Assembly: GCF_003918875.1 (NCBI RefSeq)
Contig: NW_025767412.1
Span: 1,674,001 to 1,738,000 of the forward strand
DNA length: 64,000 nucleotides
Direction of reading: 5' to 3'
From: Haliotis rubra
Taxonomy: Eukaryota
Part shown: positions 6,193 to 41,288 of the stretch, piece after piece
How the letters are laid out: the number at the start of each line of letters is the position of its first letter
How positions within the stretch are numbered: the stretch's first letter is position 1
Notes under the pieces: generated by a model
Seen by the model: the letters and a program-made list of their open reading frames with translations, nothing else
Database searches by the model: none
Told to the model about the DNA's origin: nothing
Made by a program: the position numbers and the translations under genes

Positions 6193-6386
6193 ATGAACAA
6201 CATACTGTACATCGCGGGGCTGCTGGCGTCGTTGATGCCGTTATCATCAGCGTTACAGTGCATCAGTTGTGTTAATGCTACCTGTATCCCTCCACCCCCA
6301 AGTTGTGAGGTTGGTCAGCGACCATGCTCTTGCTGTATGGAATGTAGAGTTGGGCTGGGAGGCGAATGTGGACCATTTTCTGTCGA
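6193..6386 (+). CDS. IGFBP-N single-domain (perlustrin-family) secreted protein, gene 1, exon 1
   Basis: MNNILYIAGLLASLMPLSSA (signal peptide-like) + LQCISCVNATCIPPPPSCEVGQRPCSCCMECRVGLGGECGPFSV, containing the IGFBP CxCCxxC motif. Phase-2 donor GA|GTAGGT at 6387. Confidence 0.85.
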
Positions 6387-6925
6387 GTAGGTCAAAGAGT
6401 ATCTCTACGTTCTTCTAAATGAGAGTTATATTTTTGTGTTTGTGAAAGTTTCATTATTTATTAACTTCAGCCATTGAATTATTGTTTTATAGTTAATGTT
6501 TCAAATGTGCGTTTCACTAAGATGACAAATATTATAATGTTTACTGTTAACATTGAAACCCGTGAAGATCCGGGTTACAATTGGTCATCAGCAACCATGT
6601 TATTGAATTTCATACTGCCAAGTAATTGTACGGCCAGTCAATTTCGCACTGTGTACTGCCATTGGACTCTGGTCTATTTAATTATATCATACAATTGTTG
6701 GTGCGCTTGAAGTGTTACAGAGTTACATCCCTTAGTCCGCTGGAACCCTGTGGTCGTTGGCTGGGTTCCCTGTTCGGCTCAAAGACGTTTCTAGGTTTAT
6801 CAGCACTAAACTTGTGCTCGTAGGTTTTACCAAAGCAGTAAACGACTAAGATCACTTCTAGCTCTCCTACGACATGAAGCTAACTTTAAACCTTAATTCA
6901 TTCACTCAAACCTATTTCGAGATTG

Positions 6926-7146
6926 ACCCGTGAAGATCTGGGTTAGAATTGATCATCAGTAAACCATGCTTGTCGTAAGAGGCGACTAACGGGATCAGGT
7001 GGTCAGGCTCGCTGACTTGGTTGACGTGTCATCGTATCCCAGTTACGTAGATCGATGCTCATGCTGTTGATCACTGGATTGTCCAGACTCAATTATTTTG
7101 CGGGAATATTGCTGAGTGCGGCGTAAAACTAAACCCACTCACTCAC
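6926..7146 (+). mobile_element. SINE family B copy (head ACCCGTGAAGATCCGGGTTAGAA, core CTTGTCGTAAGAGGCGACTAA), in intron 1 of gene 1
   Basis: Dispersed ~240-bp repeat present more than 10 times in the window, ending in a (CACT)n tail. It resembles molluscan V-domain/RUDI-type SINEs (from recall). Confidence 0.75.
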
Positions 7147-7231
7147 TATTTCGATATTGTTCGTTTTTTTATCAGAGCAAAACCAGGGCTCGCGTGATAT
7201 TGTTTTCTGTGTGATTATATCTTTCTTGTAG

Positions 7232-7394
7232 ATGCGAATCTCGTCTAGTATGTTTGACTAACGCCGGTGCCTACAACGGCCGCCCCCCTTACTGGGCAAA
7301 TGTCGTGGGGAAATGCATCCTGCCCTCGGCCCTACTTCCATCTTCTGCCACACCGTCACAGATCACACCATCGTTGATCACGTTACTGAAGAAA
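7232..7394 (+). CDS. Gene 1, exon 2 (Cys10-12 plus Pro/Ser/Thr-rich tail)
   Basis: Acceptor CTTTCTTGTAG| at 7231. In-frame splice gives (E)CESRLVCLTNAGAYNGRPPYWANVVGKCILPSALLPSSATPSQITPSLITLLKK and completes 12 Cys. Strong donor GTGAGT at 7395; without it the ORF reads on to 7478. Possible exon 3 at 8018 (CTTCTTTCAG|AAT GCG GAC TAG) is unproven. Confidence 0.8.
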
Positions 7395-7608
7395 GTGAGT
7401 AATTCAATACATCTTTTACTTCAGACTTGCTTGAGGAAAGGCGGCTCACCCCTTTCACGAACACCTGGTGTTCCCTGATAAATAATCACGGTTAAACAAA
7501 GACCTCATTCATCCATCTTCTCACACTGGATAAATGTCAAGAGAAGACGAATATAATATATAATATATAAATGTCTGTGATGTACTTTATAACAGGTTGA
7601 CTGAAATG

Positions 7609-7857
7609 ACCCGTGAAAGTCCGGGTTAGAATGAGCCTTCAGTAACCCATGCTTGTCGTAAGAGGCGACTAACGAGATCGGGTGGTCAGGCTTGCTGACT
7701 TGGTTGACACATGTCATCGGTTCCCAGTTGCGCAGATCGATGCACATGCCGTTGATCACTGGATTGTCTGGTTCAGACTCGATTATTTACAGATCGCCGC
7801 CATATAGCTGGAATATAGCTGAGTGCGGCGTAAAACTAAACTCACTAACTCACTCAC
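7609..7857 (+). mobile_element. SINE family B, full-length copy
   Basis: Complete head-core-tail, ending GCGGCGTAAAACTAAACTCACT... Confidence 0.8.
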
Positions 7858-8502
7858 TTGACTGAAATATTCTGAACACATTAAGATTCACGACTATTTG
7901 GGGAGGTATGTTGTTTAATGAAAGCTGAGCACACTCAACAGTATCCCCAACAATATTTATGTTTATAGGGAACCCAATTGTATACACCGATGCAATCATG
8001 TCATGATCTTCTTTCAGAATGCGGACTAGTTGGAAAAAGCCAGCTTCGATATTTGACCCTGTATGATTGTGTTGATTGATTAAAGGGAACATCGCCATTC
8101 GGGTCTTTCTTTCCACATCAAGCTTACAGCTCAAGGACGTGATATAACTGGAACAGTGTGCAATGCGGTGTTATCCGCAACTCACAACACATCACTTGTT
8201 GTAACCAACAATTTCAACCACGAACGCTTGTCGGAGGACACGTACAGACTGGGTACATAGTGACAGACATGTTTAGACTGAGAAATGTAAGCTGCACCCA
8301 ATCTTCGTATTGAAAAATAAAATTGTTATCCAAAATCATCTTACTGTACTTATAAGAGAGCATTTGCATGAGTAACCAGCACATGTACTTCATGTACAAA
8401 ATTAATATAGAAGTTTTGTTCAACAAAACAGTGCAATTTTGTTGGGGCTTTGCTATCCTTCGCTCGTTTGGCTTGTGGCAGCGTGGCAGGATTATTGAAC
8501 AA

Positions 8503-12904: not shown

Positions 12905-13003
12905 TCAAGAACAAACCGTGATTTATTTACAGAGGGCACATTTTACATAAATGCATTACTGATAGAAATAGTGAATGGTCTTCACGTGATCAGAGTTTTT
13001 TTT
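12905..13003 (-). other. Predicted non-coding 3' UTR exon 3 of gene 2
   Basis: Acceptor T10CAG| at 13004 and AATAAA at 12922-12927 (-). The block is conserved with 20830-20962 and 28190-28319. Confidence 0.65.
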
Positions 13004-13089
13004 CTGAAAAAAAAAATAATCCCGATAATAACTTTAGAGGATCAAACACAAAACTAGAAATCAACAGCACTGGAAATCGAATGGTGTAT

Positions 13090-13229
13090 NNNNNNNNNNN
13101 NNNNNNNNNNNNNNNNNNNNNNNNNNNNNNNNNNNNNNNNNNNNNNNNNNNNNNNNNNNNNNNNNNNNNNNNNNNNNNNNNNNNNNNNNNNNNNNNNNNN
13201 NNNNNNNNNNNNNNNNNNNNNNNNNNNNN
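13090..13229. other. Assembly gap (140 N)
   Basis: Run of N inside predicted intron 2 of gene 2. Confidence 1.
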
Positions 13230-14059
13230 TCATCTTTTCCATATGATGGGAAATTCTCTGTTCTGCCTTCGTCACGCCGAAGACCTGGGTTCGATTCCAG
13301 ACATGGTACAGTGTCTGAAGCCCATTTCTGGTGTCCCCACCATGTTATTGTTAGAATATTTCTAAAAGCGGCCTAAAACTAACTCTCTCACTCATTCATT
13401 CGCCCATCATGTACATAAATGCACTTCATATTCCCCATATGATGAGAAATTCTGTGTTCTGTGATGTCGTGTCCAGTCGTTATAGGCAAAGCAAAATCCT
13501 CAAAGCAACCTTTGCCTATTATATACTTAACTTATATCGATGGAAACCGCCTTTATTGAAATAACTTAAATGATGTGATTAGCCGACTACTCAAGGCAGG
13601 GGGGGGGAGGGGTATGCAAATATCATGACGCTATTTTTTATGTCGCAGAGTTGCCTCCCTTGGCCATGCCAGAAACCCTTGCTTATGGGTTCGAATCTCG
13701 GTCCGTCCTGTGTGTGTCTTTCTCACCTTGGATTTCACCAAAGTGGTAGCTGTGTGGCACCTGCATTACTTCGAGTTTTCCTCCGACAGAGAGCTGGTCA
13801 GATGAGGGATAACTGATTGAGTGTAATAGTGTTCACACAAACCAAACTGAGTCAGTGTCATATGACTTGTTTACATAGTAATGCGTTGAGAATAATATAG
13901 AATACATAATATGGTCGTCATTCGTATGAATAATTGGCAGTGAGTAAGGGGTAGGGGCTAGGGACAAGAGACATAGGCGTCTCCGTTCGCTGTCCACTAC
14001 ACCTGCCCGAAACTGATTAAATAAGCTTGTCACCAAGTGATCTTGGGTTTCATCAAACT

Positions 14060-14223
14060 TGAGTGAGTGAGTATGGTTTCACGCCACGTTAAGCAATATT
14101 CTAGCAATATTACGGCGGGGGACACCAGAAATGGTCTTTGCACATTGTACCCATGTGGGGAATCGAACCGGGTCTTCAGCGTGACAAGCGGATGTTTTAA
14201 CCATTAGGCTGCCCCACCGCCCC
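14060..14223 (-). mobile_element. SINE family A copy
   Basis: Matches 10028-10193 from head to tail. Confidence 0.85.
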
Positions 14224-14508
14224 TTCACCAAACTGGAAAAAATCCTGCACGTCCACGTCAGACTGACAAGCCGTTACTTCCTTGAAGTACATTACGTAAA
14301 TACTTCGAGTAATCTGAGGTTCGACACAAATGCAACATGATAATTAAAGTAAGAACATGCATAGACCAAGCCTCTACTTCGAGACAGCCGTATCGTCGAC
14401 ACATCAAAGCTCGACACAACGGTGTGTTACTGTCACTAACATACTGCTAAATGCAGCGTAAACCTCTTACCCATTAATGACACTTACCTTAACTGACACT
14501 GGAGAGTT

Positions 14509-14628
14509 TTAGTTTGTAGAGATGTCGAGATGGGCACACACCCCTTGAAACTGGGAAAATTTGGCACGTTTTTATACGCTTCTATCTTGTTACCACTTGA
14601 CTTAAAGCACCAAAGATCAAACTGGCAC
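14509..14628 (-). CDS. Perlustrin-like paralogue (gene 2), exon 2; 1-bp frameshift at 14541-14544
   Basis: Acceptor TTTGTTTTCCAG| at 14629; reads (R)CQFDLWCFKSSGNKIEAYKNVPNFPSFKG. Adding one base to the G4 run gives VCAHLDISTN-TAA (stop 14509-14511), collinear with VCARVDVCTS-TAA of the perlustrin copies. Donor AAG|GTAAGT at 14487. Confidence 0.85.
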
Positions 14629-15199
14629 CTGGAAAACAAAACTTGCCTTGACCCGTGGGCTTCAATGTCCTGTATACTAGTATATTTATAATCGCACCAC
14701 CGTATATATAATAATCTCACTCGGATCGTTATATATGCCCCCTCCACTTCATGTTACATTGCTGCCTGACAACGGTACAATATCCTGTATCGAATCTAGT
14801 ATGCCACTCAAGGAAGTTGCAAGCATATCATTCTACACATTTAACACACTGTACACTGTACATGTTACATATACATACTATGTATCAATTTACGCGTTTC
14901 TCGTCCCATAGTAAAGTATAGATATGTCAGTATTGTCGTCAGCTGTAGTAAAGTACTTAGTATATCATTGTGCACATATATATCAGTATAGCGGTAAACA
15001 CATATTGCACACTATAGTGAAGTACAAGTAAATCAGTATTGTATTACACATATCATACACGGTCGTACAAAATGAATAAATCAGTATACAAATATTATAT
15101 GCTATAGTAAAGTATAAGTATATCAGTAAACACATATAATACAAAGTAGCATAGTATAGGTAAATAGTATACCACCCACTATAGTAAATCATACGTAAA

Positions 15200-16025
15200 T
15201 CAGTATACACATAGACAGTGTCAGTATACGCTGTATACACATAGACGGTGTCAGTATACGCTTTATACACATAGACAGTGTCAATATACCCTGTATACAC
15301 TTAGACTGTCAGTTTACGCTGTATACACATAGACATTGTCAGTATACGCTTTATACACATAGACAGTGTCAGTATACGCTGTATACACATAGACTGTCAG
15401 TTTACGCTGTATACACATAGACGGTGTCAGTATACGCTGTATACACAGACAGTGTCAGTACACGCTGTATACACAGACATTGTCAGCATACGCTGTATAC
15501 ACAGACAGTGTCAGTATACGCTGTATACACATAGACTATCAGTTTACGCTGTATACACATAGGCAGTGTCAGTTTACGCTGTATACACATAGACGGTGTC
15601 AGTTTACGCTGTATACACATAGACAGTGTCAGTACACGCTGTATACACAGACAGTGTCAGTATACGCTTTATACACATAGACAGTGTCAGTATACGCTCT
15701 ATACACATAGACTGTCAGTATACGCTGTATACACATAGACAGTGTCAGTATACGCTCTATACACATAGACTGTCAGTATACGCTGTATACACATAGACTG
15801 TCAGTATACGCTCTATACACATAGACTGTCAGTATACGCTTTATACACATAGACATTGTCAGTATACGCTCTATACACATAGACTGTCAGTACACGCTGT
15901 ATACACATAGACAGTGTCAGTATACGCTGTATACACATAGACAGTGTCAGTATACGCTGTATACACAGACAGTGTCAGTATACGCTGTATACACATAGAC
16001 AGTGTCAGTATACGCTCTATACACA
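15200..16025. repeat. 28-30-bp minisatellite (CAGTATACGCTGTATACACATAGACAGTGT)n in intron 1 of gene 2
   Basis: About 28 tandem units; absent from the homologous intron of the perlustrin copies. Confidence 0.95.
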
Positions 16026-16266
16026 TATGTCACACATACGATATAGTAAAGTGTAAATATATCATTACAGTATTAACATATCACACGTCATAGTAAGTAC
16101 ATGCATGTCATTATACACAGATAACGCACCACATATACAGGACAAAAACTCAACTGAAACGAGAACTCTCTAAAATTGTTGTTCTTGCTGTCTTTGTTCA
16201 TGAGTTCCTGCCAATACTAAATGAACAATTGAAGACTTATACAATAGGATGAGAGTAGGTTAGGAT

Positions 16267-16503
16267 GAGTGAGTTTAGTTTTACGCCGCACTCAGCAATA
16301 TTCCAGTCATATGTGCCGGTCTGGAAATAATCGATCCGGACCAGACAATCCGGTGATAAACAACATGAGCATCAATCTACGCAATTGGGATACGGTGGCA
16401 TATGTCAACCAAGTCAGCGAGCCTGACCATCCGATCCCGTAATCGCCTCTTACGACAAGCATGGGTTACTGAAGATCAATTCTAACCCGGACCTTCACGG
16501 GTA
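16267..16503 (-). mobile_element. SINE family B copy
   Basis: Reverse complement of the 7609-7857 element. Confidence 0.85.
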
Positions 16504-16629
16504 TGTAGGTTCGGAGATGAAGGGACTGCTTAATGTAACAATATTGCATTGGGCGGGGTAGCTTGGGGTACACAAGAATTGGAAAATAAATTTCAGACTT
16601 GGCACAAACACGAAAACGTTTTGAAATAC

Positions 16630-16823
16630 CTTTGTGTCAAGCTTCCGCAGGGTTGTCCAAGCTCAAGTGGACATTTTGGGCAACAACCGCAAGGGGCGTA
16701 CACGTAGTTCGGAGGTTGACAGGGTAAACCGACGGTCGTGCAAGCAACATCTTCACAGCTAGTACAAGTCAAGGCATCGGAATACAGGGCAAGACTCAGG
16801 AACACAAAGACACCCAACATCAT
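16630..16823 (-). CDS. Perlustrin-like paralogue (gene 2), exon 1
   Basis: MMLGVFVFLSLALYSDA|LTCTSCEDVACTTVGLPCQPPNYVYAPCGCCPKCPLELGQPCGSLTQ(R); phase-2 donor AG|GTATTT at 16629. Confidence 0.92.
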
Positions 16824-16906
16824 CTTGCAAACTGTCTTGCACGAGTTGATTACAAGACTTGGACGATTCATGCAACAGGATTAATACAACACAGGCACCT
16901 GCGTTG

Positions 16907-20608: not shown

Positions 20609-20829
20609 CAAAACACACGACCTCTAACAACTAAATCACTCATTTATACGTTACTGTACGTATCTGACAAATATAGCGTCTGTATCAGTCATGTGTTAGT
20701 GAGTGCTGTTGCATATTCTAGATACATCACCGTGCCCATGAAAGTTCTACAATTAAGTCTTCATAAGGACCAAACCGTCACATAGCGTGACACATTCTGC
20801 ATTTAGACTGCTCCTCCATCACAGGGACG

Positions 20830-21988: not shown

Positions 21989-22109
21989 TTAGCTTGTACA
22001 GACGTCGACCCTGGCGCACACACCCTTGAAATTGAGATACCATGGCACGTATTTATAGGCTTCTATCTTGTTCCTTTTTCGCCTCAAGCACCAAAGATCA
22101 AACTGGCAC
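21989..22109 (-). CDS. perlustrin: Perlustrin copy A, exon 2
   Basis: Acceptor TTTATTTTCTAG| at 22110; reads (R)CQFDLWCLRRKRNKIEAYKYVPWYLNFKGVCARVDVCTS*. Confidence 0.92.
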
Positions 22110-22213
22110 CTAGAAAATAAAATTTGCCATGCATAAAATATGCACATATACGGCATCACAGTAAAGGACAAATAGACAACTGAAGCGACAACTCTCTCAA
22201 ATACTGTTCTACA

Positions 22214-22440
22214 CGTGAAGATCGGGGATAAAACTGGTATTCATGCTTGTCGTAAGGGCCGACTAATGGGATCGGGTTCTCACTGACTTGGTTGGCATGT
22301 CAACGTAACCCAACTGCATAGATCGATGCTCATGCTGTTGTTCACTGGATTGTCAGGTCCAGACTTGATTATTTACAGACAGCCGCCATATAGCTTGACT
22401 ATTGCTGAGTGCGGCATTACACAACCAACAAACAAACAAA
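22214..22440 (+). mobile_element. SINE family B copy in perlustrin intron 1 (duplicate at ~29577-29803)
   Basis: Family B core with an (AAAC)n tail. Confidence 0.75.
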
Positions 22441-22651
22441 AACTGTTATATTCGAATAATCACAACGAAGTATAACGAAGTAAAATAAAATGAACCATTG
22501 GAGATTTACACAGTAGGATGAGAGTAGGTTGGGAGGGGTAGGGGCTGCATTAACGCAACAATATTGCATTGGGTCCGGGTCTGTGTTGGGTTTTGAGGAC
22601 ACAAGAATCGGGAATGGATTTCACAAATCGTACAAAAACAACTTCAAATAC

Positions 22652-22845
22652 CTTTGTGTGAAGCTTCCGCATGGTTGTCCAAGCTCAAGTGGACATTCTG
22701 GGCAACAACCGCAAGGCGGGTACACGTATTCCGATGGCTTACAGGGTAAGCCGATGTACGGGCAAGGAGTATTTTCACAGCTAGCGCATGACAAGGCATC
22801 AGAATACAGGGCAAGACTCAAGACCACTAAGACACCCAACATCAT
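22652..22845 (-). CDS. perlustrin: Perlustrin copy A, exon 1 (104-aa precursor with exon 2; nacre IGFBP-N-domain protein)
   Basis: MMLGVLVVLSLALYSDA|LSCASCENTPCPYIGLPCKPSEYVYPPCGCCPECPLELGQPCGSFTQ(R). The mature sequence closely matches Haliotis laevigata perlustrin as recalled (LSCASCEN...IGLPCKPSEYVY..CGCCP.CPLELGQPCGSFTQRCQFDLWCLRRK.NKIEAYKYVPW.L.FKGVCARVDV). Phase-2 donor at 22651. Confidence 0.93.
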
Positions 22846-26860: not shown

Positions 26861-27079
26861 TGTTTACGTGACACTCACTAATATTATAACTACTTAACGG
26901 CGGACTGAATGTAACCAAATACGGTGCCGACAAACCAGTGGTATATATCTTCAAGTCTATTTCGTAGGAGATCTTAGACAATATTACTAACCAAGATTAA
27001 TTGACCGTGACTATATGGTGTTCTTTCACAGATAGTGGAACCCAAAACTCACCAAAGTCCTTCTATTCATTGAAAAGAC

Positions 27080-27903
27080 TAAATAAATATCAATCAATCA
27101 ATCTTTTATCAGAACTGATAGCCACAGGCCCATAGTACATGTATATATAGTTTTCAGTAGATTTCTCTTTCATAATAGCCTGATAGATAATAAACTAATA
27201 TTTCAATTTATATACCGTTAGCAGTTGACAATGACTGTTAACTATGTGTTTTGACAGTTGTTTCGTAAAATAACTGGGTATGTATGTATATTTTATGAAG
27301 CCCAATTAAACTTATTACTCTCGGCGCTTGCGTTTACATCTAGATTACGTAACAATTTGTTGGCTTTGGATGAGTAGCGTAGTGGACATGGATAGAGAGT
27401 TTTAACCAGTACCGGAATACAACGTTTACGTGTGAACACATGAATAGGACATCTACCTGCTTCTCCTGGACAATTGTGTACTGGCGACATTCGCAAACCA
27501 AGGAATCTTTTACATATACAATAATAATACCCTTTCCAAGCGTTTGTGTTTATGAGAGCCCCATAATTCCTACCCGTATAATAATACAGGTAGTATCTTA
27601 CAGATCGAATATTTTTTAAGTAAACGTCATGTGGCAAATCTTTATTAAAGCTGCAAAGACATTTTGTACCAGATGCCAAAGTTTTCTCCTCCCGTCAGAG
27701 GAAGGGACCAATTCAGAGTTCTACTAAATAACTCGCCAAAGATACTGGTAGGAAGTAACAACTTCAAGCGTAGTTGATTTACATGTCCACTTTGAAGATT
27801 TTGACATTTTTGATCCTGTTTAATAAAACCATAAAAGTTTAGCTTTATCAAGATTAGAATTTATGGCCCATGTACTACCGTAGGTTTCTAAAGCATCAAT
27901 ATG
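27080..27903 (-). mobile_element. Degraded LINE 3' fragment cut by the duplication breakpoint
   Basis: ORF 27293..27679 (CKRFLGL...GEAGRCPI) and a (GATT)n tail at ~27090. Confidence 0.6.
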
Positions 27904-28189
27904 CCTTTATTGTCTCTCATAATGTATTTTTTCGATTGTTCTAACCGCTAGGCATCTTAGAAAACAAAACACACGACCTCTAACAACTAAATCACTCATT
28001 TATACGTTACTGTACGTATCTGACAAATATAGCGTCTGTATCAGTCATGTGTTAGTGAGTGCTGTTGCATATTCTAGATACATCACCGTGCCCATGAAAG
28101 TTCTACAATTAAGTCTTCATAAGGACCAAACCGTCACATAGCGTGACACATTCTGCATTTTAGACTGCTCCTCCATCACAGGGACGTCA

Positions 28190-28319
28190 GTCATTTTAAA
28201 AAACGTGATTTATTTACAGAGAGCACATTTTTACATAAATGCATTACTGCATGTTTAACAATGCGACTGACTGAAATAGTGTCTGGTGTCTGTTTGTATT
28301 GTGTCTTCAGAGGCTGTTT
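28190..28319 (-). other. Predicted 3' UTR exon 3 of perlustrin copy B
   Basis: Acceptor at 28320, AATAAA at 28209-28214 (-), donor at 29341. Confidence 0.7.
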
Positions 28320-29351
28320 CTGAAAAACAGATAAATAATTCCGATGATGGCTTCAAACACAAAACTAGAAATCAACAGTAATCGACTGTTGTATATATAA
28401 TCCCTTCCTTCTTTCCTTCATTCATTCATTCATCATGCACATAAATACTCTTTCCATAATATATTTTCCATATATGATAGGAAATTATCTGTTCTGTACG
28501 GAAGCTACCGAATTCTGCCGGCGATATCTCTCAGAGCCGTGAAATGGTGTTTTGGTGAACATTCATGCGTCGGGCAACTGCACGTTGAGACTGGCCAGCT
28601 TCAAAGCAAACCAATGGCGATATGACCGTTGGCTTCACTTAGACGTGGCATTTTGCGTTCGTCAACAATAATCCAAATACAGTGAATAATCGACAGACAG
28701 CGATCAACCTTTTATACCCATCATTGAGACTATCTGATCCCCAACTTTCACGTGCATTGTGTATTCTGTGACACTACACGCCGAAATTGAAAATCATGCC
28801 GTTAAATACGGGTATTTTACGGATGGTGCGTTTTGTTGTGATGTTTCAAAACATAAACACCATTGGACTCATAAACATAGCAAACCCTTTTGTAAACTGA
28901 ATCACGTTTTAATTCAATGCTGAAATTGATATTTTCATGATGCGTTTCTTTTTGGGAGAGTATATCAATACAAGTAACTATAATGACAATTCTTTGCCTT
29001 TTTTAATTTCGTATTGTTTTACGCCGTACTCAACATTTGTCCACCCCAGTCAAGTCAACCTGTAAACAATTACGAAAAAAGCCAATAACATTTTCTCACC
29101 GTGGCCCTACTACGCTTCCGTAGTTCTGTAATCTCGTGCCCAGTCGTTTTAGGCAAAGCAAAATTTTCAAAGCAATGTGTAAAACTTAACGACTTCTTTT
29201 TATTGACTTTTAAATGACTAGAATGATGTGGTTCGATTCCCAAAATCGGTACAGTGAGTGAAGCCCATTTCTGTTGTCCCCCTCTGGTAAAAGCGGCGTA
29301 AAACTAACTCACTCACTTTCTTACTTTAAATCGACACTGACCTTGAGAGTT

Positions 29352-29472
29352 TTAGCTTGTACAGACGTCGACCCTGGCGCACACACCCTTGAAATTGAGA
29401 TACCATGGCACGTATTTATAGGCTTCTATCTTGTTCCTTTTTCGCCTCAAGCACCAAAGATCAAACTGGCAC
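29352..29472 (-). CDS. perlustrin: Perlustrin copy B, exon 2
   Basis: Same translation and splice sites as copy A. Confidence 0.9.
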
Positions 29473-30014
29473 CTAGAAAATAAAATTTGCCATGCATAAA
29501 ATATGCACATATACGGCATCACAGTAAAGGACAAATAGACAACTGAAGCGACAACTCTCTCAAATACTGTTCTACACGTGAAGATCGGGGGATAAAACTG
29601 GTATTCATGCTTGTCGTAAGGGCCGACTAATGGGATCGGGTTCTCACTGACTTGGTTGGCATGTCAACGTAACCCAACTGCATAGATCGATGCTCATGCT
29701 GTTGTTCACTGGATTATCAGGTCAGACTTGATTATTTACAGACAGCCGCCATATGAGCTTGACTATTGCTGAGTGCGGCATTACACAACCAACAAACAAA
29801 CAAAACTGTTATATTCGAATAATCACAACGAAGTATAACGAAGTAAAATAAAATGAACCATTGGAGATTTTACACAGTAGGATGAGAGTAGGTTGGGAGG
29901 GGTAGGGGCTGCATTAACGCAACAATATTGCATTGGGTCCGGTCTGTGTTGGGTTTTGAGGACACAAGAATCGGGAATGGATTTCACAAATCGTACAAAA
30001 ACAACTTCAAATAC

Positions 30015-30208
30015 CTTTGTGTGAAGCTTCCGCATGGTTGTCCAAGCTCAAGTGGACATTCTGGGCAACAACCGCAAGGCGGGTACACGTATTCCGATGG
30101 CTTACAGGGTAAGCCGATGTACGGGCAAGGAGTATTTTCACAGCTAGCGCATGACAAGGCATCAGAATACAGGGCAAGACTCAAGACCACTAAGACACCC
30201 AACATCAT
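30015..30208 (-). CDS. perlustrin: Perlustrin copy B, exon 1
   Basis: Same translation and donor as copy A. Confidence 0.9.
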
Positions 30209-33200
30209 CTTGCAAACTGTCTTACACTAATTGAGTACAAGATCTGGCAGACTTATACAACAGCATCAATACAACACGGGCACCTGCATTGTTTATATAG
30301 GCATGTCGTGCATTATAGTGACATGTTTATAGCTTAAAAAATGCTAATTGGGGGGAAAAAATTCTCTAAAACGGTATGTTTGGCATGTTTACGATGAGAA
30401 AATGTTAGCGTTTCCAACAGATACACCTCACCTTGCATTTGATAGCTAACCTTATATTTGATACCTTACAACTGGCACCTTAATTGCCATTTGTCATACA
30501 TCGTCATCTGAAACTTTCCACTTTACCAGTTGATTCCATGGGATACTGTCGGTATGATGTGTGATTCCAGTAGGTAGTGTCTGTATGGTTGTGTGATCCA
30601 ATGAGATACTGTCTGTATGGTTGTGATAAAGCTTAGGGTATGTTTTACTGCACATTCTATCTCCATGCAAAGCAAAGTTTCACCGTGATATATAGCCTAG
30701 AAAGTGGTTTTACATAGTTCTATCTCCATAACATTACACAACTTGTTAGTTCCACAGTATTCCAAGTGGTTATTGGAACAATCAGCAAATCCAGTTCGAT
30801 CACGTGCCATGGAGATGACACAATCTGGAAGGTACCATCATTATAGTCATACAAATAGAACATTAGAACATTGTCTTTATTTATGATTTATTCATTGTAA
30901 TTCGTAAGCTATGAAAATAAACAAATAAAACAAGTTAAAACAACACAAATACAACCTGGTACAGTAGAAATAATCATACAATAATCGTACAATAATGATT
31001 TATCTGCATTTCTGATACATAGAACACTCTGGTTCTGAACAAAATTTACAAATCTATTTGGCCGAGTGTTCTATCTCCAAGTGTTTTTCGTTAATTACTT
31101 ATTTGTTTCAAAAGCTTTAACATACTTTTGGTTATTGCCTAAGTCTTGTTGATATTTTAACACCTGTATGTGCACAGTTCCAAAGAATTTGATCGAATAT
31201 ATTTGAAAATATTGTTGCTCTTAACTTCAAGATTGATCTTCTCGAAAATAGTTTTTTTAAGGACCTAGAACATTCTGGTTTTCAGACGACGATGTGTAGC
31301 TAATAGCCCAATAGAGACATCCATACATAAGTTATTTTATATATATTAGTAAGACATGTGTTTTAGGGAAATATAAGAATTTGTAAAGTGGACATACAAC
31401 AGTGGAGGTTGCTTAATACCAAACTAATTTCTTAATGAAATGTTATGTCTCGAATATGATGGCTCTAAATAGGTGACGTACATATGTTTTGACTTTCAGC
31501 TGTACATGATTTTGGCGCCTACGCAATTTATGCAGTTAATGCCAAAGCTAAATATTTTACATCCAGAACATAGTTTGAATTAAACTACATGTCATTGGCT
31601 GATGAGATTATAATTGTTCTTTCTGGTAACCAAAACCTTAAAATTGAACGAACTTTAATTTTCAAGATTGTTTAATAATCGATAAGAAGCTATATAATGG
31701 AGACTTGACCAGGCAAACCATTAACTGATATGGATGTAATCAGTGATGCTTGGGGTCACGGTACAGTCACAATCATTTAACATCCGACCACCTCTTCCAC
31801 TGAGTCGTCTCCAACGACAATATCGGCCACTTGAGAATCCCTATGGGGTTTGGATATTTAAGTGGTGTCGCTTTTGTTGGTAGTGTTTATATAACTATAA
31901 CTAGAGGGAAATGGTTTTCGCCTGGAAAGTTACCTGACTCAGTTGTGATGTTAAGGATTAATTTTGTATGTAATGTAAAAGAGGTTTAGGGGATGAAAAC
32001 ACATTTACTTTACATGTATAACTTTAATAAACTGTTTAGGAGACATTCTAGAAGTTCCGAGTAATAGGAATGACAAGTCGTTATGGATGATCAACTTCTT
32101 TATTGTGAAATAGCGCCGTTTCGGTACAGATACTTGTACCGTTTTCAAACATCATATTGATCATCCATAAAGACTAGTCTTGTCATTCCTAACTCTTAAT
32201 AACCTGAAAATTATGTATATACCCCAAAAGTACTTAAGTAAACCACCAAAAATTGCATTCTCTTCTTTCATGACTCCTAGAAATTATACCGATACTTTAC
32301 ACCTGTCAATATATTCAAAGCATGCTACTAACTTATGTATATCCATGGTGCTGTAACACTGCATGTAACATCCGACTGTGTATGTTACTCTGTATATTGG
32401 TTATTCTATGTGTTCTTCTGAACGCCTCTGGGGCGGCGGGGTAGCTCAGTGGTTAAAGCGTTCGCGCGGGTTCGATTCCCCACATGGGTACACTGTGTGA
32501 AGCCCTATTCTGGTGTCCCCCCGCCATGATGTTGGTAGAATATTGCTAAAAGCAGCGAAAAACCATCACTCACTCACTCTTAACACTTCTAAATACACAA
32601 AAGTTGGATAATCAGACCAAACAATAGACATTCGGTCAAAATACCTACAAGTGAGGTTAAGACACTCGCCAGGTGACCACTGTCACCACCCGATCCCATT
32701 TAACAGCCAAGAAAGGCGTTCTCGTAGATCCGTTCCACCAAGCGTTAGTAGAGTTGTGCTTTAACATAGACTTGCTAGTGTCGTGGAGTCACGTTCGCTT
32801 TGTAGGACGGGGCCCCCGGGGACCTATATCAACCAGCGTCACGACTGTGTTGATCTAGCTGTGTGACAAGTGCAGTGGCATAAATGTGGCAGCTAAAAGA
32901 TTTTTTAGTTTTTAGCTTTCGAATGGGCCTGGCACTGTTTCTGACATTTCCTTAATTGTTTATCATCACGAAAATACGTCCACTTGTAAATGATTCATCC
33001 CGCCTCTAGATATACCAGACAGTATGAGATGAATAATCATGCCGCACATGACACATTAAACAATAGTTACTGTCAAAAACCGTCAGGCAAACTAGGTAAT
33101 TGAAAATTGGATTTGATCTAAAATAACAAACGTTACCATAACGTTACAAGGCGGAAAATACCCGTCGTAACCTGCAAACTGTTGTCCAAAGCACAAACTA

Positions 33201-34439
33201 TGATACCCTTGTCAAATACATCACCATTGCAAACATAGTTCTAGTTTATTTTCATTTTAGCCATTTTCAAAGATGGTTGTTTACATTCTATTTCTTGCTA
33301 GTAAATTAAGGTTTTTCATATAAATACGGTATTTGAGTAAAGAGATGCAACAGTGAATATTGTGAGTCATCATCGCGGTAGACAGACAGGATGAATCACT
33401 GTCGTAGCTTTACTTCCTGAAATGTGTTTCCATACACATTGTCTGTGTGTACTCTTTTCTTGAGTGAGTGAGTTTGGTTTTACTCTGCTTTCAGCTATAT
33501 AATGAAGGAGGAACGCCGGAAAGCCTTTTCTTGCCCATGAGGATGGACATGTTGCTGACAAGAAACATAATCATGGGAGAACCAGAATAGGGTTCTGATA
33601 CGTCTAAGGGGCGCAACTCGAATTATGACACATCTAACGACTGGATCATTCGTTCACCCGGTGAGCGTATAATCTGTCAAAAAGCTTAATCAGTATTCAT
33701 ACATTTAAATATATATTTTATTCTTAATCACACATTGACGATTACGAGTGTGAAGTGAATGGTCCTGAACAGCAAACAGAGAATCTTCTTTTTCGCTTTT
33801 CAGACCAGCCGTAGGACTCTTCATGGCTGCTTTTCTTCTCACCACACTTAAACTCGGAGCACTGGTCGTTCAGAGAGCCTTCCTGTGAAACACTGAGCCT
33901 GTACCGATTAGATATGGCACTTCCTTTGGATGAAATCATTTCTGTACCTCCAGTACTGAACCAACAATATCGACATAGGCGCATAATTTCAGGACAGACA
34001 TTTTGAAGACTAAATACGGCATCACGTTGTTTTGTCAGGTGCTTGTTTACGTGACTGACTGACTGACTGAGTTTGGTTTTACGCCGCTTTTAGCAATATT
34101 TCAGCAACATCACGGCGGGGGACACCGGAAATGGGCTTTACACATTGTACCCATGTGGGGAATAGAACCCGGGTCTTCGGCGGGACGAGCCAACGCTTTA
34201 ACCATTAGGCTACCCCACCGCCCTGTTTACGTGACACTCACTAATATTATAACTACTTAACGGCGGACTGAATGTAACCAAATACGGTGCCGACAAACCA
34301 GTGGTATATATCTTCAAGTCTATTTCCGTAGGAGATCTTAGACAATATTACCAACCAAGACACTGACCGTGACTATATGGTGTTCTTTCACAGATAGTGG
34401 AACCCAAAAACTCACCAAAGTCCTTCTATTCATTGAAAA

Positions 34440-35520
34440 GATTAAATAAATATCAATCAATCAATCTTTTTATCAGAACTGATAGCCACAGGCCCATAGT
34501 ACACGTATATATAGTTTTCAGTAGATTTCTCTTCATAATAGCCTGATAGATAATAAACTAATATTTCAATTTATATACCGTTAGCAGTTGACAATGACTG
34601 GTTAACTATGTGTTTTGACGGTTGTTTCGTAAAATAACTGGGTATGTATGTATATTTGCGAAGCCCAATTAAACTTATTACTCTCGGCGCTTGCGTTTAC
34701 ATCTAGATTACGTAACAATTTGTTGGCTTTGGATGAGTAGCGTGAAGTGGACATGGATAGAGAGTTTTAACCAGTACGGAATACAACGTTTACGTGTGAA
34801 CACATGAATAGGACATCTACCTGCTTCTCCAAGGACAATTGTATTTGGCGTAGACATTCGCAAACCAAGGAATCTTTTACATATACAATAATAATACCCT
34901 TTCCAAGCGTTTGTGTTTATGAGAGCCCCATAATTCCTACCCGTATAATAATACAGGTAGTATCTTACAGTCGAATATTTTTAAGTAAACGTCATGTGGC
35001 AAATCTTTATTAAAGCTGCAAAGACATTTTGTACCAGATGCCAAAGTTTTCTTCTCCCTCGTCAGAGAGGGACCAATTCAGAGTTCTACTAAATAACTCG
35101 CCAAGATACTGGTAGGAAGTAACAACTTCAAGCGTAGTTGATTTACATGTCCACTTTGAAGATTTTGACATTTTTGATCCTGTTTAATAAAACCATAAGT
35201 TTAGCTTTATCAAGATTAGAATTTATGGCCCATGTACTGCCGTAGGTTTCTAAAGCATCAATATGCCTTTATGGTCCAATCACTGACTCTGATAAAAACA
35301 CCACATCATCAGCAAACATCAAAATGGTTTCTTTTACAATAAGATCTCGAAATAACTGGACACCAGTTGTGCATAACACTGTTAATCTCAGACACTAGTT
35401 CGTTAATAAAAACGAAAATAGCAAAGGGCTTAGGACACAACCTCGCCTAAGACCAACAGAACAACCAAATACATCTGTTAGAAAATTGTAATTTGTAAAA
35501 ACATAGGCTTTTTCATTTTC
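34440..35520 (-). mobile_element. Degraded LINE fragment (longer copy, includes RT core remnant)
   Basis: Minus-strand remnants of G.R.GCVLSPLLF and LMFADDVVF at ~35300-35460, continuous with the fragment duplicated at 27080-27903. Confidence 0.7.
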
Positions 35521-37079
35521 CTAAAAAGATTCATTTGTAAAATTTTATCCATTTTTGAATGGAAACCAGGTTTATTAAAAAAAGAAATTGTAAGAGGTAA
35601 TTATGTAATAATCTCAGTCCTTGGATGTACAATGGTCCGTGTATTCATGACCTTCCACATAGGCATTAACTTCACTGAAACAGTACTAAGTAGATTCAAG
35701 TTTTGCAATAATAGTTATCATGAAATACGCCGTCATAATACACGTCTATTGACTTCTGAGCTATACAACTCTCCTTTCTGTTATTGATTATTATGATAGA
35801 CATTGTTAACAGAAACTAATTATCGAAAATAAGCATTGAAAAATTCTGATCAATAACACAACAGGTGTTAATTCGTTTATAGTTAAGAGCAACGTATTGT
35901 TACACGACTGCCGCATGTTACCATAGCCGCTCAATACAGGTGAGGTAGTTAAACAGGAAGGACACACGACCTTAACAGTGCGTTGTTAGAAGCATTAAGT
36001 GTTATTAAGTCAGTTCAAGTGCGGCCTTAATCGAAGACGACTGGTACTAGATGTAGTCTAAGTGTTTTACCGAGGAATCAATACAGTAAGTTCTTGTTAC
36101 GGTTTTACTTTTCTGTTGTGATAATGCCACCATGTCATATTTACATAACATTGAATATTACATTCGTAGTTTAAATTGTCATCAGGTAAGGTAAGCGTGT
36201 CACCAGCATTGCCTCAAGTCCCTATTCTACGAAGCGATCTGAGCGATAGGACGATTGTAATTCCTAAACTGATTCTGTGACCACTCTGTAATCAAGGACC
36301 CCCATTCCACAAACGGCGTTAGTGCTGGAATGATCGTAACTGTACTATTTTTGCATTGGTGTACGACAGTTGTGGCGCTTAGACGGCTATGTGGAATTGT
36401 ACTCAGGTTTCTAAAGTCGATTTCTAAATTAAAAGTTAATCTGAAACATGTATGCAAAGGAGAGAAACAATTGTATTCTAAAATTGACCTTACAAATCAA
36501 TAGAAATATCTACAAGGGAATTGCAAAGGCAGTATACAATAGTGATAGTGAAAGTGAAACGGCTATGGCAGTACAAATACAATAGCAATATAACATAGAT
36601 TCAGTTAATACAGCACAAAGACAATGATGAAAATATTCACCTTGCTGCAGCAGTGGTCAAGCTCCCAAAACAGGCCAAGGGTGGGAATCAAAGGTGAAAA
36701 CTGATCTTCACCCAACTGCTTGTCCTAAGGAAAATGTAATCATCATGGGAGATAGCCTATCTAACTCCCAGCATAAATATAGTAACTATCACACCATAAT
36801 TCTCGACTACAACTTGGCAGAAATAATGTAACACAATATCAACACTGTCCGGCAATGAATAACACTGCATGAGGTGAACACTGTCTCCATAATTTCACGT
36901 TGTCTATTGATGAACTAGGTACTGTCAACCAGGTTTGTTATGTACACTTACCAGTGTAATCAAATACATGTATTGTAACCAGCTTTCATGCCTTGTTAAA
37001 GCTGATTATAATGCCACGCGATTAAAATTCAGGTTTTACATTAAATGACATTAGACCAGAAATATGTCACGCATTTCGT

Positions 37080-37377
37080 GTGATATACACAGGATACTAA
37101 ACGACCTTCCGTGTAATACCAATTTTATTAAACGAGTTAATGATTTAGTATCAAACGTGTTGGTATCAAGCGGGTTTGATACTAAATCTTTCACGGGTTT
37201 AATAAAAATGTTATTTCACGGAAGCGAGTTTAGTATTCTGTTTATCACTCTTCAACATAATTTACAGTCTAATACCACTGTGACAGAGGTATTAGCATTG
37301 TGACGTCATAACTGTAAACCATTATGATGTCATACGTCATTGTGTAATAACATTGTAGATTTATTAAACAGTGATAT
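37080..37377. mobile_element. Hairpin-containing non-autonomous element with GTGATAT terminal direct repeats (copy at 39171-39469; possibly Crypton-like)
   Basis: Imperfect ~170-bp palindrome at 37080-37248; the right end ...TTAAACAGTGATA is complementary to TATCACT at ~37243. Confidence 0.6.
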
Positions 37378-37691
37378 CTTCAACGGGTAATAAATAAATG
37401 TTAAAAAGGTAAATCACGTTGAGGACTTAATTTGACGTTAGCATGGTGGAGTTGTATTTTGGTAAATCAAACATTAACACTTTTGCGACCCCATCAATTT
37501 CGCAGCTGCTGTTACCGAACCGCTCCAACCGCACATCGTTCTGTATCCCCATAGTTTTTCTGCGTCAATACTGAGGTTTATTAGTCGTTACAACGTACTT
37601 CCACCTCTCCGAATGGCCACGTTAAATATATCGTGTCCACGATATGAAGTTATACCTATCGATTTATGAATATGCATGACTATGAAAAGAG

Positions 37692-37698
37692 TATAAAA
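37692..37698 (+). promoter_or_regulatory. TATA box (TATAAAA) of gene 4 exon 1a; exon 1b equivalent at 39785-39791
   Basis: Canonical TATA ~60 bp upstream of the ATG in both copies. Confidence 0.6.
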
Positions 37699-37755
37699 TT
37701 ATCATCTTCAAGATAACAGATATCTGTCCTATTCCTATCTTCAGAGTAGCGCACA

Positions 37756-37975
37756 ATGAGGGATACACAATCCTCGCCGTTGTGACAGTGGTCACTCTGG
37801 CCGTGGTCAGCGCCACCTCGGGATATCCCAGAACTAAACTGTGCCACCAGTCCTGCGCCAATGTCAAGTGTCCCAAGCTGCGGCGACGACACTGTCAGAT
37901 AGTGATGAAGCAGTGTGGCTGCTGCCCAGTGTGTGCGTCAGGTATTGGGCGGCGGTGCGGCTCGCAGCATCCACC
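37756..37975 (+). pseudogene. Gene 4 exon 1a (duplicated first exon); apparent 1-bp frameshift just after the ATG
   Basis: ATGAGGGATAC (G3) versus ATGAGGGGATAC (G4) in copy b. Otherwise it reads ...TKLCHQSCANVKCPKLRRRHCQIVMKQCGCCPVCASGIGRRCGSQHP with an intact donor CC|GTGAGT. May be a homopolymer sequencing error. Confidence 0.7.
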
Positions 37976-38567
37976 GTGAGTAGTACATATTACCAGTTAC
38001 CAATAATTCATCATTCAATATCCATTGTGCTTTGTCAATTGTGCATTGTCCATTGTGCATTGTCCATTGTGCATTACCCATAGGCGATTACGCATTGGCT
38101 ATTTATTATCCATAAGCCATTAGTCATTCCCCATTCCCCATTATAGATTGGCCATTGCCCATTGTCCATTACCCATTATCCACTGGCCATTACCTTTTAC
38201 TTATTATCTATTATCCATTGCACATTACCATTACTCATTACCAGTTACCCATTACCAGTAACACATATCTCGATGATATTGCTTCCATATTGCTAAAAGC
38301 GGCGTAAAACCATACTCGCTCACTATAAGGTAAGGAATTCTATTCTTCCCAAATGCTTCTGCATATTTCCCTGCCACGCATAACGTATTAAAAAGACCTG
38401 TACGTCAATAAACTATTATTGTAGACCCTTTCTTCAGCCTCAAGGTGAACTGATACCAAGAAACCTTTGTTGTTAGATGTTCTAAAATCAGTGTAGAGTA
38501 CAGGTTGCTACCTTTTCCAAGGAGTCTCGATGAACTTATGATATATCGCTCGTCCTTGGACTAAAGT

Positions 38568-38775
38568 TGGTTGGTTGTTTAACGCTGCACTCACCAATAT
38601 CCAAACAATATGGCGGTGGTCTGTATATAGTCAAGTCTGGATCAGACAATCCAGTGATCAGCAGCATGAGCATCGATCTAAGCAAATAAGGATACGATGA
38701 CATGTGTCAACCATGTCAGCGAGCCTGACCACCCGATCCCGTTAGTCTCCTCTTACGACAAGTATTGGTTGCTGC
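38568..38775 (-). mobile_element. SINE family B copy (duplicate at ~40677-40885)
   Basis: Reverse complement of the family B core and tail. Confidence 0.75.
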
Positions 38776-39848
38776 ATAAAGACCAAATCATACTCGGTAA
38801 CGTCACAAATGACATTCATATCACACTGCTTGAAAACATCGGTAGTCTCATGAGAGCATCTAAAAGTTTCACGGAGACTTTTAACAGTACACAAAGACAT
38901 ATAGTTTGTCATATAACATTTGACCAATATCAACACTGTCCGGCAATGAATAACACTGCATGAGGTGAACACTGTCTCCATAATTTCACGTTGTCTATTG
39001 ATGAACTAGGTACTGTCAACCAGGTTTGTTATGTACACTTACCAGTGTAATCAAATACATGTATTGTAACCAGCTTTCATGCCTTGTTAAAGCTGATTAT
39101 AATGCCACGCGATTAAAATTCAGGTTTTACATTAAATGACATTAGACCAGAAATATGTCACGCATTTCGTGTGATATACACAGGATACTAAACGACCTTC
39201 CGTGTAATACCAATTTTATTAAACGAGTTAATGATTTAGTATCAAACGTGTTGGTATCAAGCGGGTTTGATACTAAATCTTTCACGGGTTTAATAAAAAT
39301 GTTATTTCACGGAAGCGAGTTTAGTATTCTGTTTATCACTCTTCAACATAATTTACAGTCTAATACCACTGTGACAGAGGTATTAGCATTGTGACGTCAT
39401 AACTGTAAACCATTATGATGTCATACGTCATTGTAATAATAACATTGTAGATTTATTAAACAGTGATATCTTCAACGGGTAATAAATAAATGTTAAAAAG
39501 GTAAATCACGTTGAGGACTTAATTTGACGTTAGCATGGTGGAGTTGTATTTTGGTAAATCAAACATTAACACTTTTGCGACCCCATCAATTTCGCAGCTG
39601 CTGTTACCGAACCGCTCCAACCGCACATCGTTCAGTATCCCCATAGTTTTTCTGCGTCAATACTGAGGTTTATTAGTCGTTACAACGTACTTCCACCTCT
39701 CCGAATGGCCACGTTAAATATATCGTGTCCACGATATGAAGTTATACCTATCGATTTATGAATATGCATGACTATGAAAAAGAGTATAAAATTATCATCT
39801 TCAAGATAACAGATATCTGTCCTATTCCTATCTTCAGAGTAGCGCACA

Positions 39849-40069
39849 ATGAGGGGATACACAATCCTCGCCGTTGTGACAGTGGTCACTCTGGCCGTGG
39901 TCAGCGCCACCTCGGGATATCCCAGAACTAAACTGTGCCACCAGTCCTGCGCCAATGTCAAGTGTCCCAAGCTGCGGCGACGACACTGTCAGATAGTGAT
40001 GAAGCCGTGTAGCTGCTGCCCAGTGTGTGCGTCGGGTATTGGGCGGCGGTGCGGCTCGCAGCATCCACC
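39849..40069 (+). CDS. Basic IGFBP-N single-domain secreted protein (gene 4), exon 1b
   Basis: MRGYTILAVVTVVTLAVVSA (signal peptide-like) + TSGYPRTKLCHQSCANVKCPKLRRRHCQIVMKPCSCCPVCASGIGRRCGSQHP; phase-2 donor CC|GTGAGT at 40070. Confidence 0.88.
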
Positions 40070-41092
40070 GTGAGTAGTACATATTACCCGTTACCAATTA
40101 TTCATCATTCAATATCCATTGTGCTTTGTCCATTGTGCTTTGTCCATTGTGCATTGTCCATTGTGCATTACCCACAGGCGATTATGCATTGGCTATTGCC
40201 CATTATTCATTATCCATAAGCCATTAGTCATGCCCCATTCCCCATTATAGATTGGCCATTACCCATTGGCCATTACCCATTATCCACTGGACATTACCTA
40301 TTACTTATTATCTATTATCAATTGCACATTACCATTACTCATTACCAATTACCCATTACCAGTAACACATATCTCGATGATATTGCTTCCATATTGCTAA
40401 AGGCGGCGTAAAACCATACTCGCTCACTATAACGTAAGGAATTCTATTCTTCCCAAATGCTTCTGCACATTTCCCTGCCACGCATAACGTATTAAAAAGA
40501 CCTTTACGTCAATAAACTATTATTGTAGACCCTTTCTTCAGCTCCGGCCTCAAGGGGAATTGATGCCAAGAAACCTTTGTTGTTAGATGTTCTAAAACCA
40601 GTGTAGAGTACAGGTTGCTACCTTTTCCAAGGAGTCTCGATGAACTTATAATATATAGCTCGTCCTTGGACTAAAGTTGGTTGGTTGTTTAACGCTGCAC
40701 TCACCAATATCCGAACAATATGGCGGTGGTCTGTATATAGTCAAGTCTGGATCAGACAATCCAGTGATCAGCAGCATGAGCATCGATCTAAGTAATTAGG
40801 GTACGATGACATGTGTCAACCATGTCAGCGAGCCTGACCACCCGATCCCGTTAGTCTCCTCTTACGACAAGTATTGGTTGCTGCATAAAGACCAAATCAT
40901 ACTCGGTAACGTCACAAATGACATTCATATCACACTGCTTGAAAACATCGGTAGTCTCATGAGAGCATCTAAAAGTTTCACGGAGACTTTTAACAGTACA
41001 TAAAGACATATAGTTTGTCATATAACATTTGACTGAAGGATTTCTCCCTTTACATACCAAGTGGCATGTGTTCAACTTCATTTACTTAACAG

Positions 41093-41288
41093 GTGTATGA
41101 AATATCTGTGGTGCATCAAGCAGACTATCACGTCCATAGAGGCCCATCGCGGATCATTGCCGGACCAGTTCAAGGGCGTCTGTGGTCACGTGAGGCCCAT
41201 TATGAAGAGGAGGCGTTACCGGAAACGGAAGCGGAAGTGGAGGGCAAGGCCAAGATGGATGTGGCATCTGAAGAGGGGAGGACATTGA
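41093..41288 (+). CDS. Gene 4, exon 2 (138-aa precursor with exon 1b)
   Basis: Acceptor TTTACTTAACAG| at 41092. Reads (P)CMKYLWCIKQTITSIEAHRGSLPDQFKGVCGHVRPIMKRRRYRKRKRKWRARPRWMWHLKRGGH*. C..LWC...IEA...FKGVC matches perlustrin exon 2. AATAAA near 41505. Confidence 0.88.

Follow-up and report, generated by a model that had tools for sequence, protein, structure and literature searches.

The DNA analyzed here is a 64-kb stretch of the Haliotis rubra genome (QXJH01000007.1:1,674,001-1,738,000, assembly GCA_003918875.1), which we refer to as the window and within which positions are given. Two NCBI H. rubra models, recovered with first-exon queries, have loci that agree with the window at every base. 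We conclude that this window very probably represents a section of a chromosomal array made up of perlustrin-type genes, which encode small secreted proteins with a single insulin-like growth factor-binding (IB) domain and short variable tails. Perlustrin is a classic nacre protein. Families of single-IB-domain proteins are common, as are tandem arrays of small Cys-rich genes with secreted products. As assembled, the window contains gene 1, gene 2, two copies of perlustrin (A and B), an extra first exon (x5) and gene 4. In the sister species H. laevigata, both the perlustrin and the gene 2 lineage are represented by shell-matrix proteins.

A shared motif and intron position define the cluster

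The original prediction for this DNA had proposed five genes and one extra first exon, with 12 Cys in the spacing of the IGFBP N-domain and a phase-2 intron just before Cys10. A six-frame scan of all 64 kb for the motif C.CC..C returned six occurrences, each located between 6.1 and 40.1 kb and each within an open reading frame (ORF) that has a hydrophobic N-terminus and nine Cys. These mark, at the coordinates predicted, the first exons of gene 1 (6193-6386, forward strand), gene 2 (16630-16823, reverse), perlustrin A (22652-22845, reverse), perlustrin B (30015-30208, reverse), x5 (approximately 37756-37975, forward) and gene 4 (39849-40069, forward). The motif reads CSCCMEC, CGCCPKC, CGCCPEC, CSCCPVC or CGCCPVC depending on the member, and the 12 Cys can be aligned in all members as predicted.

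All six first exons are closed by a GT donor at the identical codon position, after the second base of the codon preceding Cys10, which gives the predicted phase-2 intron. The donor sequence is caaag/GTATTT in gene 2 and perlustrin A/B, GA/GTAGGT in gene 1, and CC/GTGAGT in gene 4 and x5. Five downstream acceptors are each followed by Cys10-x5/6-Cys11-x20-24-Cys12, and the second exons carrying Cys10-12 start at 7232 (gene 1), 14628 (gene 2), 22109 (perlustrin A), 29472 (perlustrin B) and 41093 (gene 4), so that six first exons face five matching second exons in the window. An in-frame stop follows 8-34 residues past Cys12 in every model. Additionally, the phase-2 intron position is common to all ten Haliotis members examined, including an upstream H. 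rubra member and four from H. rufescens (discussed below). This shared pattern of motif, donor and acceptor is well beyond chance. Identity among the copies ranges from approximately 100% (perlustrin A and B) to 71% (gene 2 and perlustrin) and 36-43% (genes 1 and 4).

Perlustrin A and B and gene 2 correspond to two H. laevigata shell proteins

Perlustrin is known from the nacre of H. laevigata (UniProt P82595; Weiss et al. 2001, as cited in PMC6003135 and PMC3374290). Perlustrin A (21989..22845, reverse strand, second exon 21989-22109) and perlustrin B (29352..30208, reverse strand, second exon 29352-29472) encode 104-amino-acid precursors and have the same coding sequence. Over all 84 residues, the mature H. 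rubra protein is 90.5% identical to P82595, sharing its 12 Cys and differing by eight substitutions, by three additional codons in the ORF, and by the presence of two copies as assembled. The Edman N-terminus of P82595, LSCASC, places signal cleavage after ...YSDA; hydrophobic N-termini are present across the cluster, as the original prediction of signal peptides had it, and for perlustrin the cleavage itself is verified in this way. Judged by sequence, perlustrin A and B are the H. rubra orthologues of P82595.

Both perlustrin ORFs end in ...ARVDVCTS (21989-22000 and 29352-29363), which places Cys-Thr-Ser, including a 13th Cys, past the Edman C-terminus. This extension could mean that the C-terminus is trimmed, that the end was missed or that the two species differ. 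When proteins of 38-122 amino acids were searched by words with perlustrin exon 1 as the query, none from H. rubra was found, and perlustrin A and B are probably unannotated in this species.

For gene 2 (12982..16871, reverse strand; exon 2 at 14488-14628 and last exon from 13003 downwards), the model is backed by both cDNA and peptides. Mann et al. 2018 (PMC6003135) described a "similar to perlustrin" protein, comp70759, which is approximately 70% identical to perlustrin and a major component of the nacre and prismatic layer of H. laevigata. All of its tandem mass spectrometry (MS/MS) peptides (CPLELGQPCGSLTQR, CQFDLWCFK, SSGNKIEAYK and NVPNFPSFK) were found exactly in gene 2. Up to ...FKG, the translated H. 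laevigata cDNA differs from gene 2 by a single residue (D>N). The same cDNA confirms the junction of exons 1 and 2 (..TQR/CQF..) and shows a further intron past the stop codon, with both splice junctions covered. The translation of exon 2 ends in ...SPVSVK, a GTAAGT donor follows (14486-14487), and the last exon runs from 13003 (KK.SDHVKT, then AATAAA). Gene 2 is the orthologue of comp70759, the second published perlustrin. Compared with H. laevigata, gene 2 has 1 substitution in 103 residues and perlustrin has 8.

The reading frame of gene 2

The precursors of gene 2 and comp70759 are alike in every sequenced peptide and in all but one residue; the difference lies in a G that is missing after ...FKG in the H. 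rubra assembly. Relative to perlustrin A, gene 2 is one base short in the run AAGGGG/TGTG at 14541-14544. As assembled, the protein reads FKGCVPIS..., i.e. FKGCVPISTSLQTKTLQCQL, in a shifted frame that runs into the last exon, and this shifted reading is exactly NCBI's 134-amino-acid product for the locus. With an X bridging the break, translation in the next frame gives VCAHLDISTN followed by a stop (14509-14511), identical to the end of the H. laevigata cDNA (...GVCAHLDISTN and stop).

An extra C behind 14540, equal to an extra G on the gene strand, is present in contigs of all three DNA runs that cover the place. These runs are genomic DNA, as their contigs cover introns and repeats resembling short interspersed nuclear elements (SINEs) occur in them at enormous depth. 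An intact gene 2 frame exists in nature.

An assembly N gap (13090..13229) lies inside the second and last intron of gene 2, with exon 2 to its right and the last exon to its left. The H. laevigata cDNA joins both flanks (...SPVSVK/KK.SDHVKT) in the same order and orientation, and they therefore belong to one transcription unit. The coding sequence of the intact gene 2 protein nowhere crosses this gap. At the other end, the NCBI model of gene 2 begins at an in-frame ATG further upstream, at 16871 (MNRPSLVINSCKTVCK-MMLGV..., window positions 16630-16871). The shorter MMLGV start is probably the real one because perlustrin A and B carry a stop just upstream of the homologous MMLGV.

Both introns of gene 2 contain repeats. 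A minisatellite of approximately 35 copies of a 28-30-nt unit (15118-16113) occupies much of the first intron. In the last intron, the segments 13300-13421 and 14032-14275 reach a k-mer depth of 1e5-1e7 in the genomic runs and have loose ends with GGTTCGATTCC; these are probably tRNA-derived SINE copies of very high abundance.

Family members are predicted to share an IGFBP N-domain fold

Using exon 1 alone, the Pfam IGFBP family (PF00219) was matched by all six first exons with E-values of 1e-5 to 1e-2 over profile positions 1-45/55. All full-length proteins matched PF00219 with E < 0.002, reaching 30.8 bits for H. laevigata perlustrin, 27.9 bits for gene 4 and 19.5 bits for gene 1 against a gathering cut-off of 28. 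Consistent with the earlier claim that no other domain is present, PF00219 was the sole family matched in Pfam and the NCBI models are only 122-138 amino acids long. Thyroglobulin type-1, Kazal or Ig domains gave no Pfam match, and the ORFs end in exon 2 or 3.

We built a family profile from 14 members and ran it against the PDB. Over the whole domain it matched IGFBP-5 (1.1e-11) and the IGFBP-4 N-domain (7e-11), and it also matched IGFBP-7, IGFBP-3, the HTRA1 N-domain and spider SIBD-1, with an overall range of 1e-11 to 1e-3. The AlphaFold model of gene 1 has a predicted local distance difference test (pLDDT) score of 74.5 overall, 80-93 in the domain and <50 in the tail. Its top 11 PDB matches are IGFBP-4, -3, -7, SIBD-1 and HTRA1-N only, with marginal Foldseek E-values of 1e-3; the fold call rests on the consistent identity of these top matches and on the sequence profile, not on the Foldseek E-values. 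Additionally, the Atlas model of gene 4 matches IGFBP5 with a template modeling (TM) score of 0.53. The profile and both models point to IGFBP N-domains, and the earlier claim of one fold with variable tails is upheld; the tails are predicted to be disordered.

The best matches are the N-domains of vertebrate IGFBP-4 and -5 (PDB 2DSP, 1WQJ, 7UFG and 1H59), which share the 12-Cys domain and the GCGCCxxC-type motif. In contrast to vertebrate IGFBPs, the abalone family has neither the linker nor the thyroglobulin type-1 C-domain. Furthermore, the N-domain is contained in one exon in vertebrate IGFBP genes, whereas in the abalone family it is split before Cys10. Similar to the abalone proteins, the arthropod SIBDs (Cupiennius salei SIBD-1, PDB 3ZXB/3ZXC, and those of shrimp and crab) are secreted and consist of one IB domain only, and both the family profile and the gene 1 model match 3ZXB and 3ZXC. 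However, identity to the arthropod proteins is approximately 25%, and these are haemocyte- or immune-associated (PMC7866140), as opposed to the two shell-matrix members in abalone. Limpet shell proteins (Lottia gigantea Lotgi1|174065 and 238970; Patella vulgata CCJ09596) likewise are gastropod proteins with a single IB domain, at 30-40% identity.

Gene 1 is conserved between abalone species

Gene 1 (6193..8029, forward strand) has coding exons at 6193-6386, 7232-7394 and 8018-8029 and encodes 122 amino acids. Its spliced translation is exactly identical to the NCBI model, named "single insulin-like growth factor-binding domain protein-2", and contains 12 Cys and a Pro/Ser/Thr-rich tail, ILPSALLPSSATPSQITPSLITLLKKNAD. 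The third coding exon is only 12 nt long (8018-8029, ...KKNAD and stop) and follows a GTGAGT donor at 7395. A two-exon model of 146 amino acids with 13 Cys was rejected, as the third exon is present in the H. rufescens orthologue and in the NCBI model alike; the long tail with the 13th Cys in that reading is intron sequence. The four tail classes of the original prediction are real, but the gene 2 tail is short only with one G added and the gene 1 tail requires the third exon.

The H. rufescens orthologue of gene 1 is 125 amino acids long, 82% identical, and also has three exons. The ratio of nonsynonymous to synonymous substitution rates (dN/dS) between these two orthologues is 0.21. This low ratio and the three-exon structure kept in H. 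rufescens show gene 1 to be a conserved functional gene under purifying selection.

Gene 4 and the extra first exon x5

Gene 4 (39849..41288, forward strand, second exon 41093-41288) encodes 138 amino acids, and its two-exon translation is identical at every residue to XP_046548723.1, annotated as "perlustrin-like". The protein contains 12 Cys, and its tail of 34 residues is rich in Arg, Lys and Trp and has an isoelectric point (pI) of 12. An exhaustive search of 1.84 billion representatives found ten relatives, all at <=40% identity, and Patella perlustrin is among these few. Gene 1 and gene 4 are 42-44% identical to P82595, which makes them paralogues rather than perlustrin.

The extra first exon x5 (37756..37975, forward strand) is a copy of gene 4 exon 1 with an intact donor. 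Its ATG is at 37756, and the G-run at 37760-37762 reads GGG in place of the GGGG of gene 4; one G short, the start of x5 reads ATGAGGGATAC compared with ATGAGGGGATAC in gene 4, and a stop follows after nine codons. In the domain frame, x5 differs from gene 4 by P>Q and S>G beside the CxCC motif.

Exon x5 arose within a 2.1-kb tandem duplication (36834-38924 and 38925-41033) that takes in exon 1, approximately 0.9 kb ahead of it and the greater part of the intron. It has no second exon because the duplication ends at 41033, 60 nt before exon 2. At 97.5% identity, the two copies are separated by 34 substitutions and 6 indels. They hardly differ over the 5' kilobase and have diverged by approximately 3% in the 3' half, with substitutions concentrated 3' of 37912. 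The 2.1-kb copies show real divergence, perhaps together with gene conversion.

It is quite improbable, in our estimate, that gene 4, x5 or both are decaying, functionless duplicates and that the NCBI gene 4 is an ab initio prediction. Such decay would agree with the lack of any gene 4 relative above 40% identity among the 1.84 billion representatives, with its long branch and odd composition, and with the neighboring copy x5, which is frameshifted as assembled. Furthermore, no RNA run matched gene 4, and no orthologue appeared in the H. rufescens loci examined, although the H. rufescens sequence examined is about 48 kb only. Yet the gene 4 ORF is unbroken through both of its exons and retains all 12 Cys. 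Its donor is a canonical GTGAGT, its acceptor is rich in pyrimidines, its signal peptide is plausible, and its Pfam score is 0.1 bit below the cut-off.

A separate proposal gives gene 4 a lineage-specific role, in which an IB domain that binds insulin peptides is combined with the 34-residue Arg/Lys/Trp tail (pI 12) as an antimicrobial or a cell-, chitin- or mineral-anchoring module. If the G loss in x5 is an assembly error, gene 4 would on this view have two duplicated promoters, and its alternative first exons would change the residues beside the CxCC motif. We regard this as a long shot.

Genes 1 and 4 could alternatively be neuroparsin-like hormones, acting as receptor ligands, with the dibasic-rich tail of gene 4 cut by prohormone convertases; we consider this unlikely. 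A haemocyte role is also conceivable for the two genes. Several KR/RR sites are indeed present in the gene 4 tail, the closest Atlas neighbors include clusters of neuroparsin-A-like and of arthropod SIBD-2 proteins, and neither gene was found in the shell proteome files of H. laevigata. Molluscan neuroparsin/IGFBP-like precursors have been reported from ganglia and mantle (PMC8398477), and an H. discus hannai single-IB-domain "IGFBP-5" is expressed in neurosecretory cells (PMC7465962). However, Neuroparsin PF07327 gave no match at E up to 1 for any family member searched. The H. discus hannai protein, moreover, is acidic and has different Cys positions, and hence is no orthologue of gene 1 or gene 4. 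This candidate, "Hdh IGFBP-5" (136 amino acids, one IB domain), was rejected as such on its pI of 5.77, its first Cys at position 47 and its GVCxxV motif.

Tandem repeats and the quality of the assembly

Perlustrin A and B each lie in one of two head-to-tail units of a 7.4-kb tandem repeat (20543-27914 and 27900-35276), with one perlustrin gene per unit. The units are 98.6% identical. They differ at approximately 50 substituted columns, many of them beside indels, and by 53 indels of 1-3 nt, of which 40 are single-base and half lie in homopolymers. This pattern is typical of unpolished long-read consensus error, and the units may be truly identical. The doubling of perlustrin is perhaps an assembly flaw rather than biology, and the single-G frameshifts of gene 2 and x5 are more likely to be assembly flaws than biology. 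Near the 3' end of each 7.4-kb unit we noted ORF fragments (27296-27694 and 34940-35077), which by eye resemble the C-terminal portion of a reverse transcriptase from a non-LTR retrotransposon.

Taken together, part of the diversity in the window may be an assembly artefact, such that perlustrin A and B are one gene doubled, gene 2 and x5 are intact, and the window holds four genes, one of them with two usable first exons. We place the probability of this explanation a little short of even. The 7.4-kb units differ mainly by 1-3-nt indels, half of them homopolymeric, and their coding sequences are identical; the frameshifts of gene 2 and x5 are both single-G losses in G-runs; and independent DNA contigs as well as the H. 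laevigata cDNA have the extra gene 2 base. Those contigs, however, may not stem from the reference animal, and the junction of the 7.4-kb units shows neither a gap nor a contig end. Additionally, substitutions between the units amount to approximately 0.4-0.7% of columns, much less than the approximately 2.5% by which the other haplotype or species departs from the window, and it is therefore unlikely that two haplotypes were laid in tandem.

Extent and evolution of the array

The family is also found outside the window. H. rubra XP_046548688.1, a "perlustrin-like" protein of 114 amino acids, is encoded on the same scaffold at 1,652,619-1,654,282, approximately 20 kb left of the window, and likewise has the phase-2 intron; it is one of the ten relatives that the exhaustive gene 4 search returned. 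The array is therefore larger than the window. In H. rufescens, the syntenic chromosome (JALGQA010000016.1) carries at least four family members. One of these is an apparently unannotated two-exon perlustrin-like gene (L003:14187-15590), which follows the gene 1 orthologue at a distance of 2 kb downstream and is encoded on the other strand; with perlustrin or gene 2 of H. rubra it shares only 45-53% identity. Two further members lie approximately 100 kb away (L005:10001-11615 and L005:18581-20095). An orthologue of gene 4 was not seen in the H. rufescens loci examined (approximately 48 kb).

A maximum-likelihood tree of 17 members supports only three groups: the gene 1 orthologues; perlustrin and gene 2 together with H. 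discus hannai perlustrin; and the upstream H. rubra member with one H. rufescens gene. Between perlustrin and gene 2, dN/dS is 0.74, which is consistent with relaxed or diversifying selection on the shell members.

The array has grown by repeated local duplication, as seen in the nested 7.4-kb and 2.1-kb tandem repeats and the shared intron position. Conserved neighbors combined with gene content that differs between H. rubra and H. rufescens fit birth-and-death evolution, and the earlier proposal of such a process gains support from these local duplications and differences in content. To the right, the first annotated gene past the cluster is a single-exon gene for a 428-amino-acid G protein-coupled receptor (47912-49198, reverse strand; Pfam 7TM_GPCR_Srw and 7tm_1).

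Discussion

Several observations weigh against reading the window as part of an array of perlustrin-type genes. Both gene 1 and gene 4 fall below the PF00219 gathering cut-off, and their NCBI proteins stand alone in the collection, with one contig each. No RNA run holding gene 1 or gene 4 stretches is on record among the run matches; those with word shares of 0.2-0.48 are genomic DNA, and small runs hold only 5-16% of the words. Furthermore, no motif specific to gene 1 or gene 4 occurs in the 28 supplementary files that accompany the H. laevigata shell proteome. The contigs that restore the gene 2 frame are only approximately 97.5% identical to the window and therefore represent another haplotype, individual or sister species, leaving an assembly error in the reference animal unproven. 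Lastly, the family tree is poorly resolved, and it therefore settles neither the order of the duplications nor the age of gene 4. A full-text literature search with the gene 1 and gene 4 motifs returned only unrelated SCCmec papers.

In the literature as cited, IGF/insulin binding is reported for H. laevigata perlustrin only. The proteins of the array may similarly bind insulin-related peptides through their IB domain, and the divergent Cys10-Cys12 loop and tails could alter ligand preference or localisation. We take this loop to be the counterpart of the region of IGFBP-5 that contacts IGF. The roles suggested in the original prediction, in defence and in directing insulin-like peptides to shell layers, are speculation.

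The cluster had been thought to be undescribed. This stands for the chromosomal array of perlustrin genes, of which we found no description in the literature searched, any more than of the gene for perlustrin itself, but not for its single members: the gene 2 protein is published (PMC6003135), and NCBI models exist for genes 1, 2 and 4.

No new mechanism is implied by these results, and the gain is a modest one of genomic context and of corrections to annotation and assembly. The public gene 2 model represents the shifted frame of an abundant second perlustrin. Perlustrin itself is now placed in an array alongside this second shell perlustrin and divergent paralogues, and the six paralogue sequences can be used to re-search shell, haemolymph and ganglion proteomes and transcriptomes.

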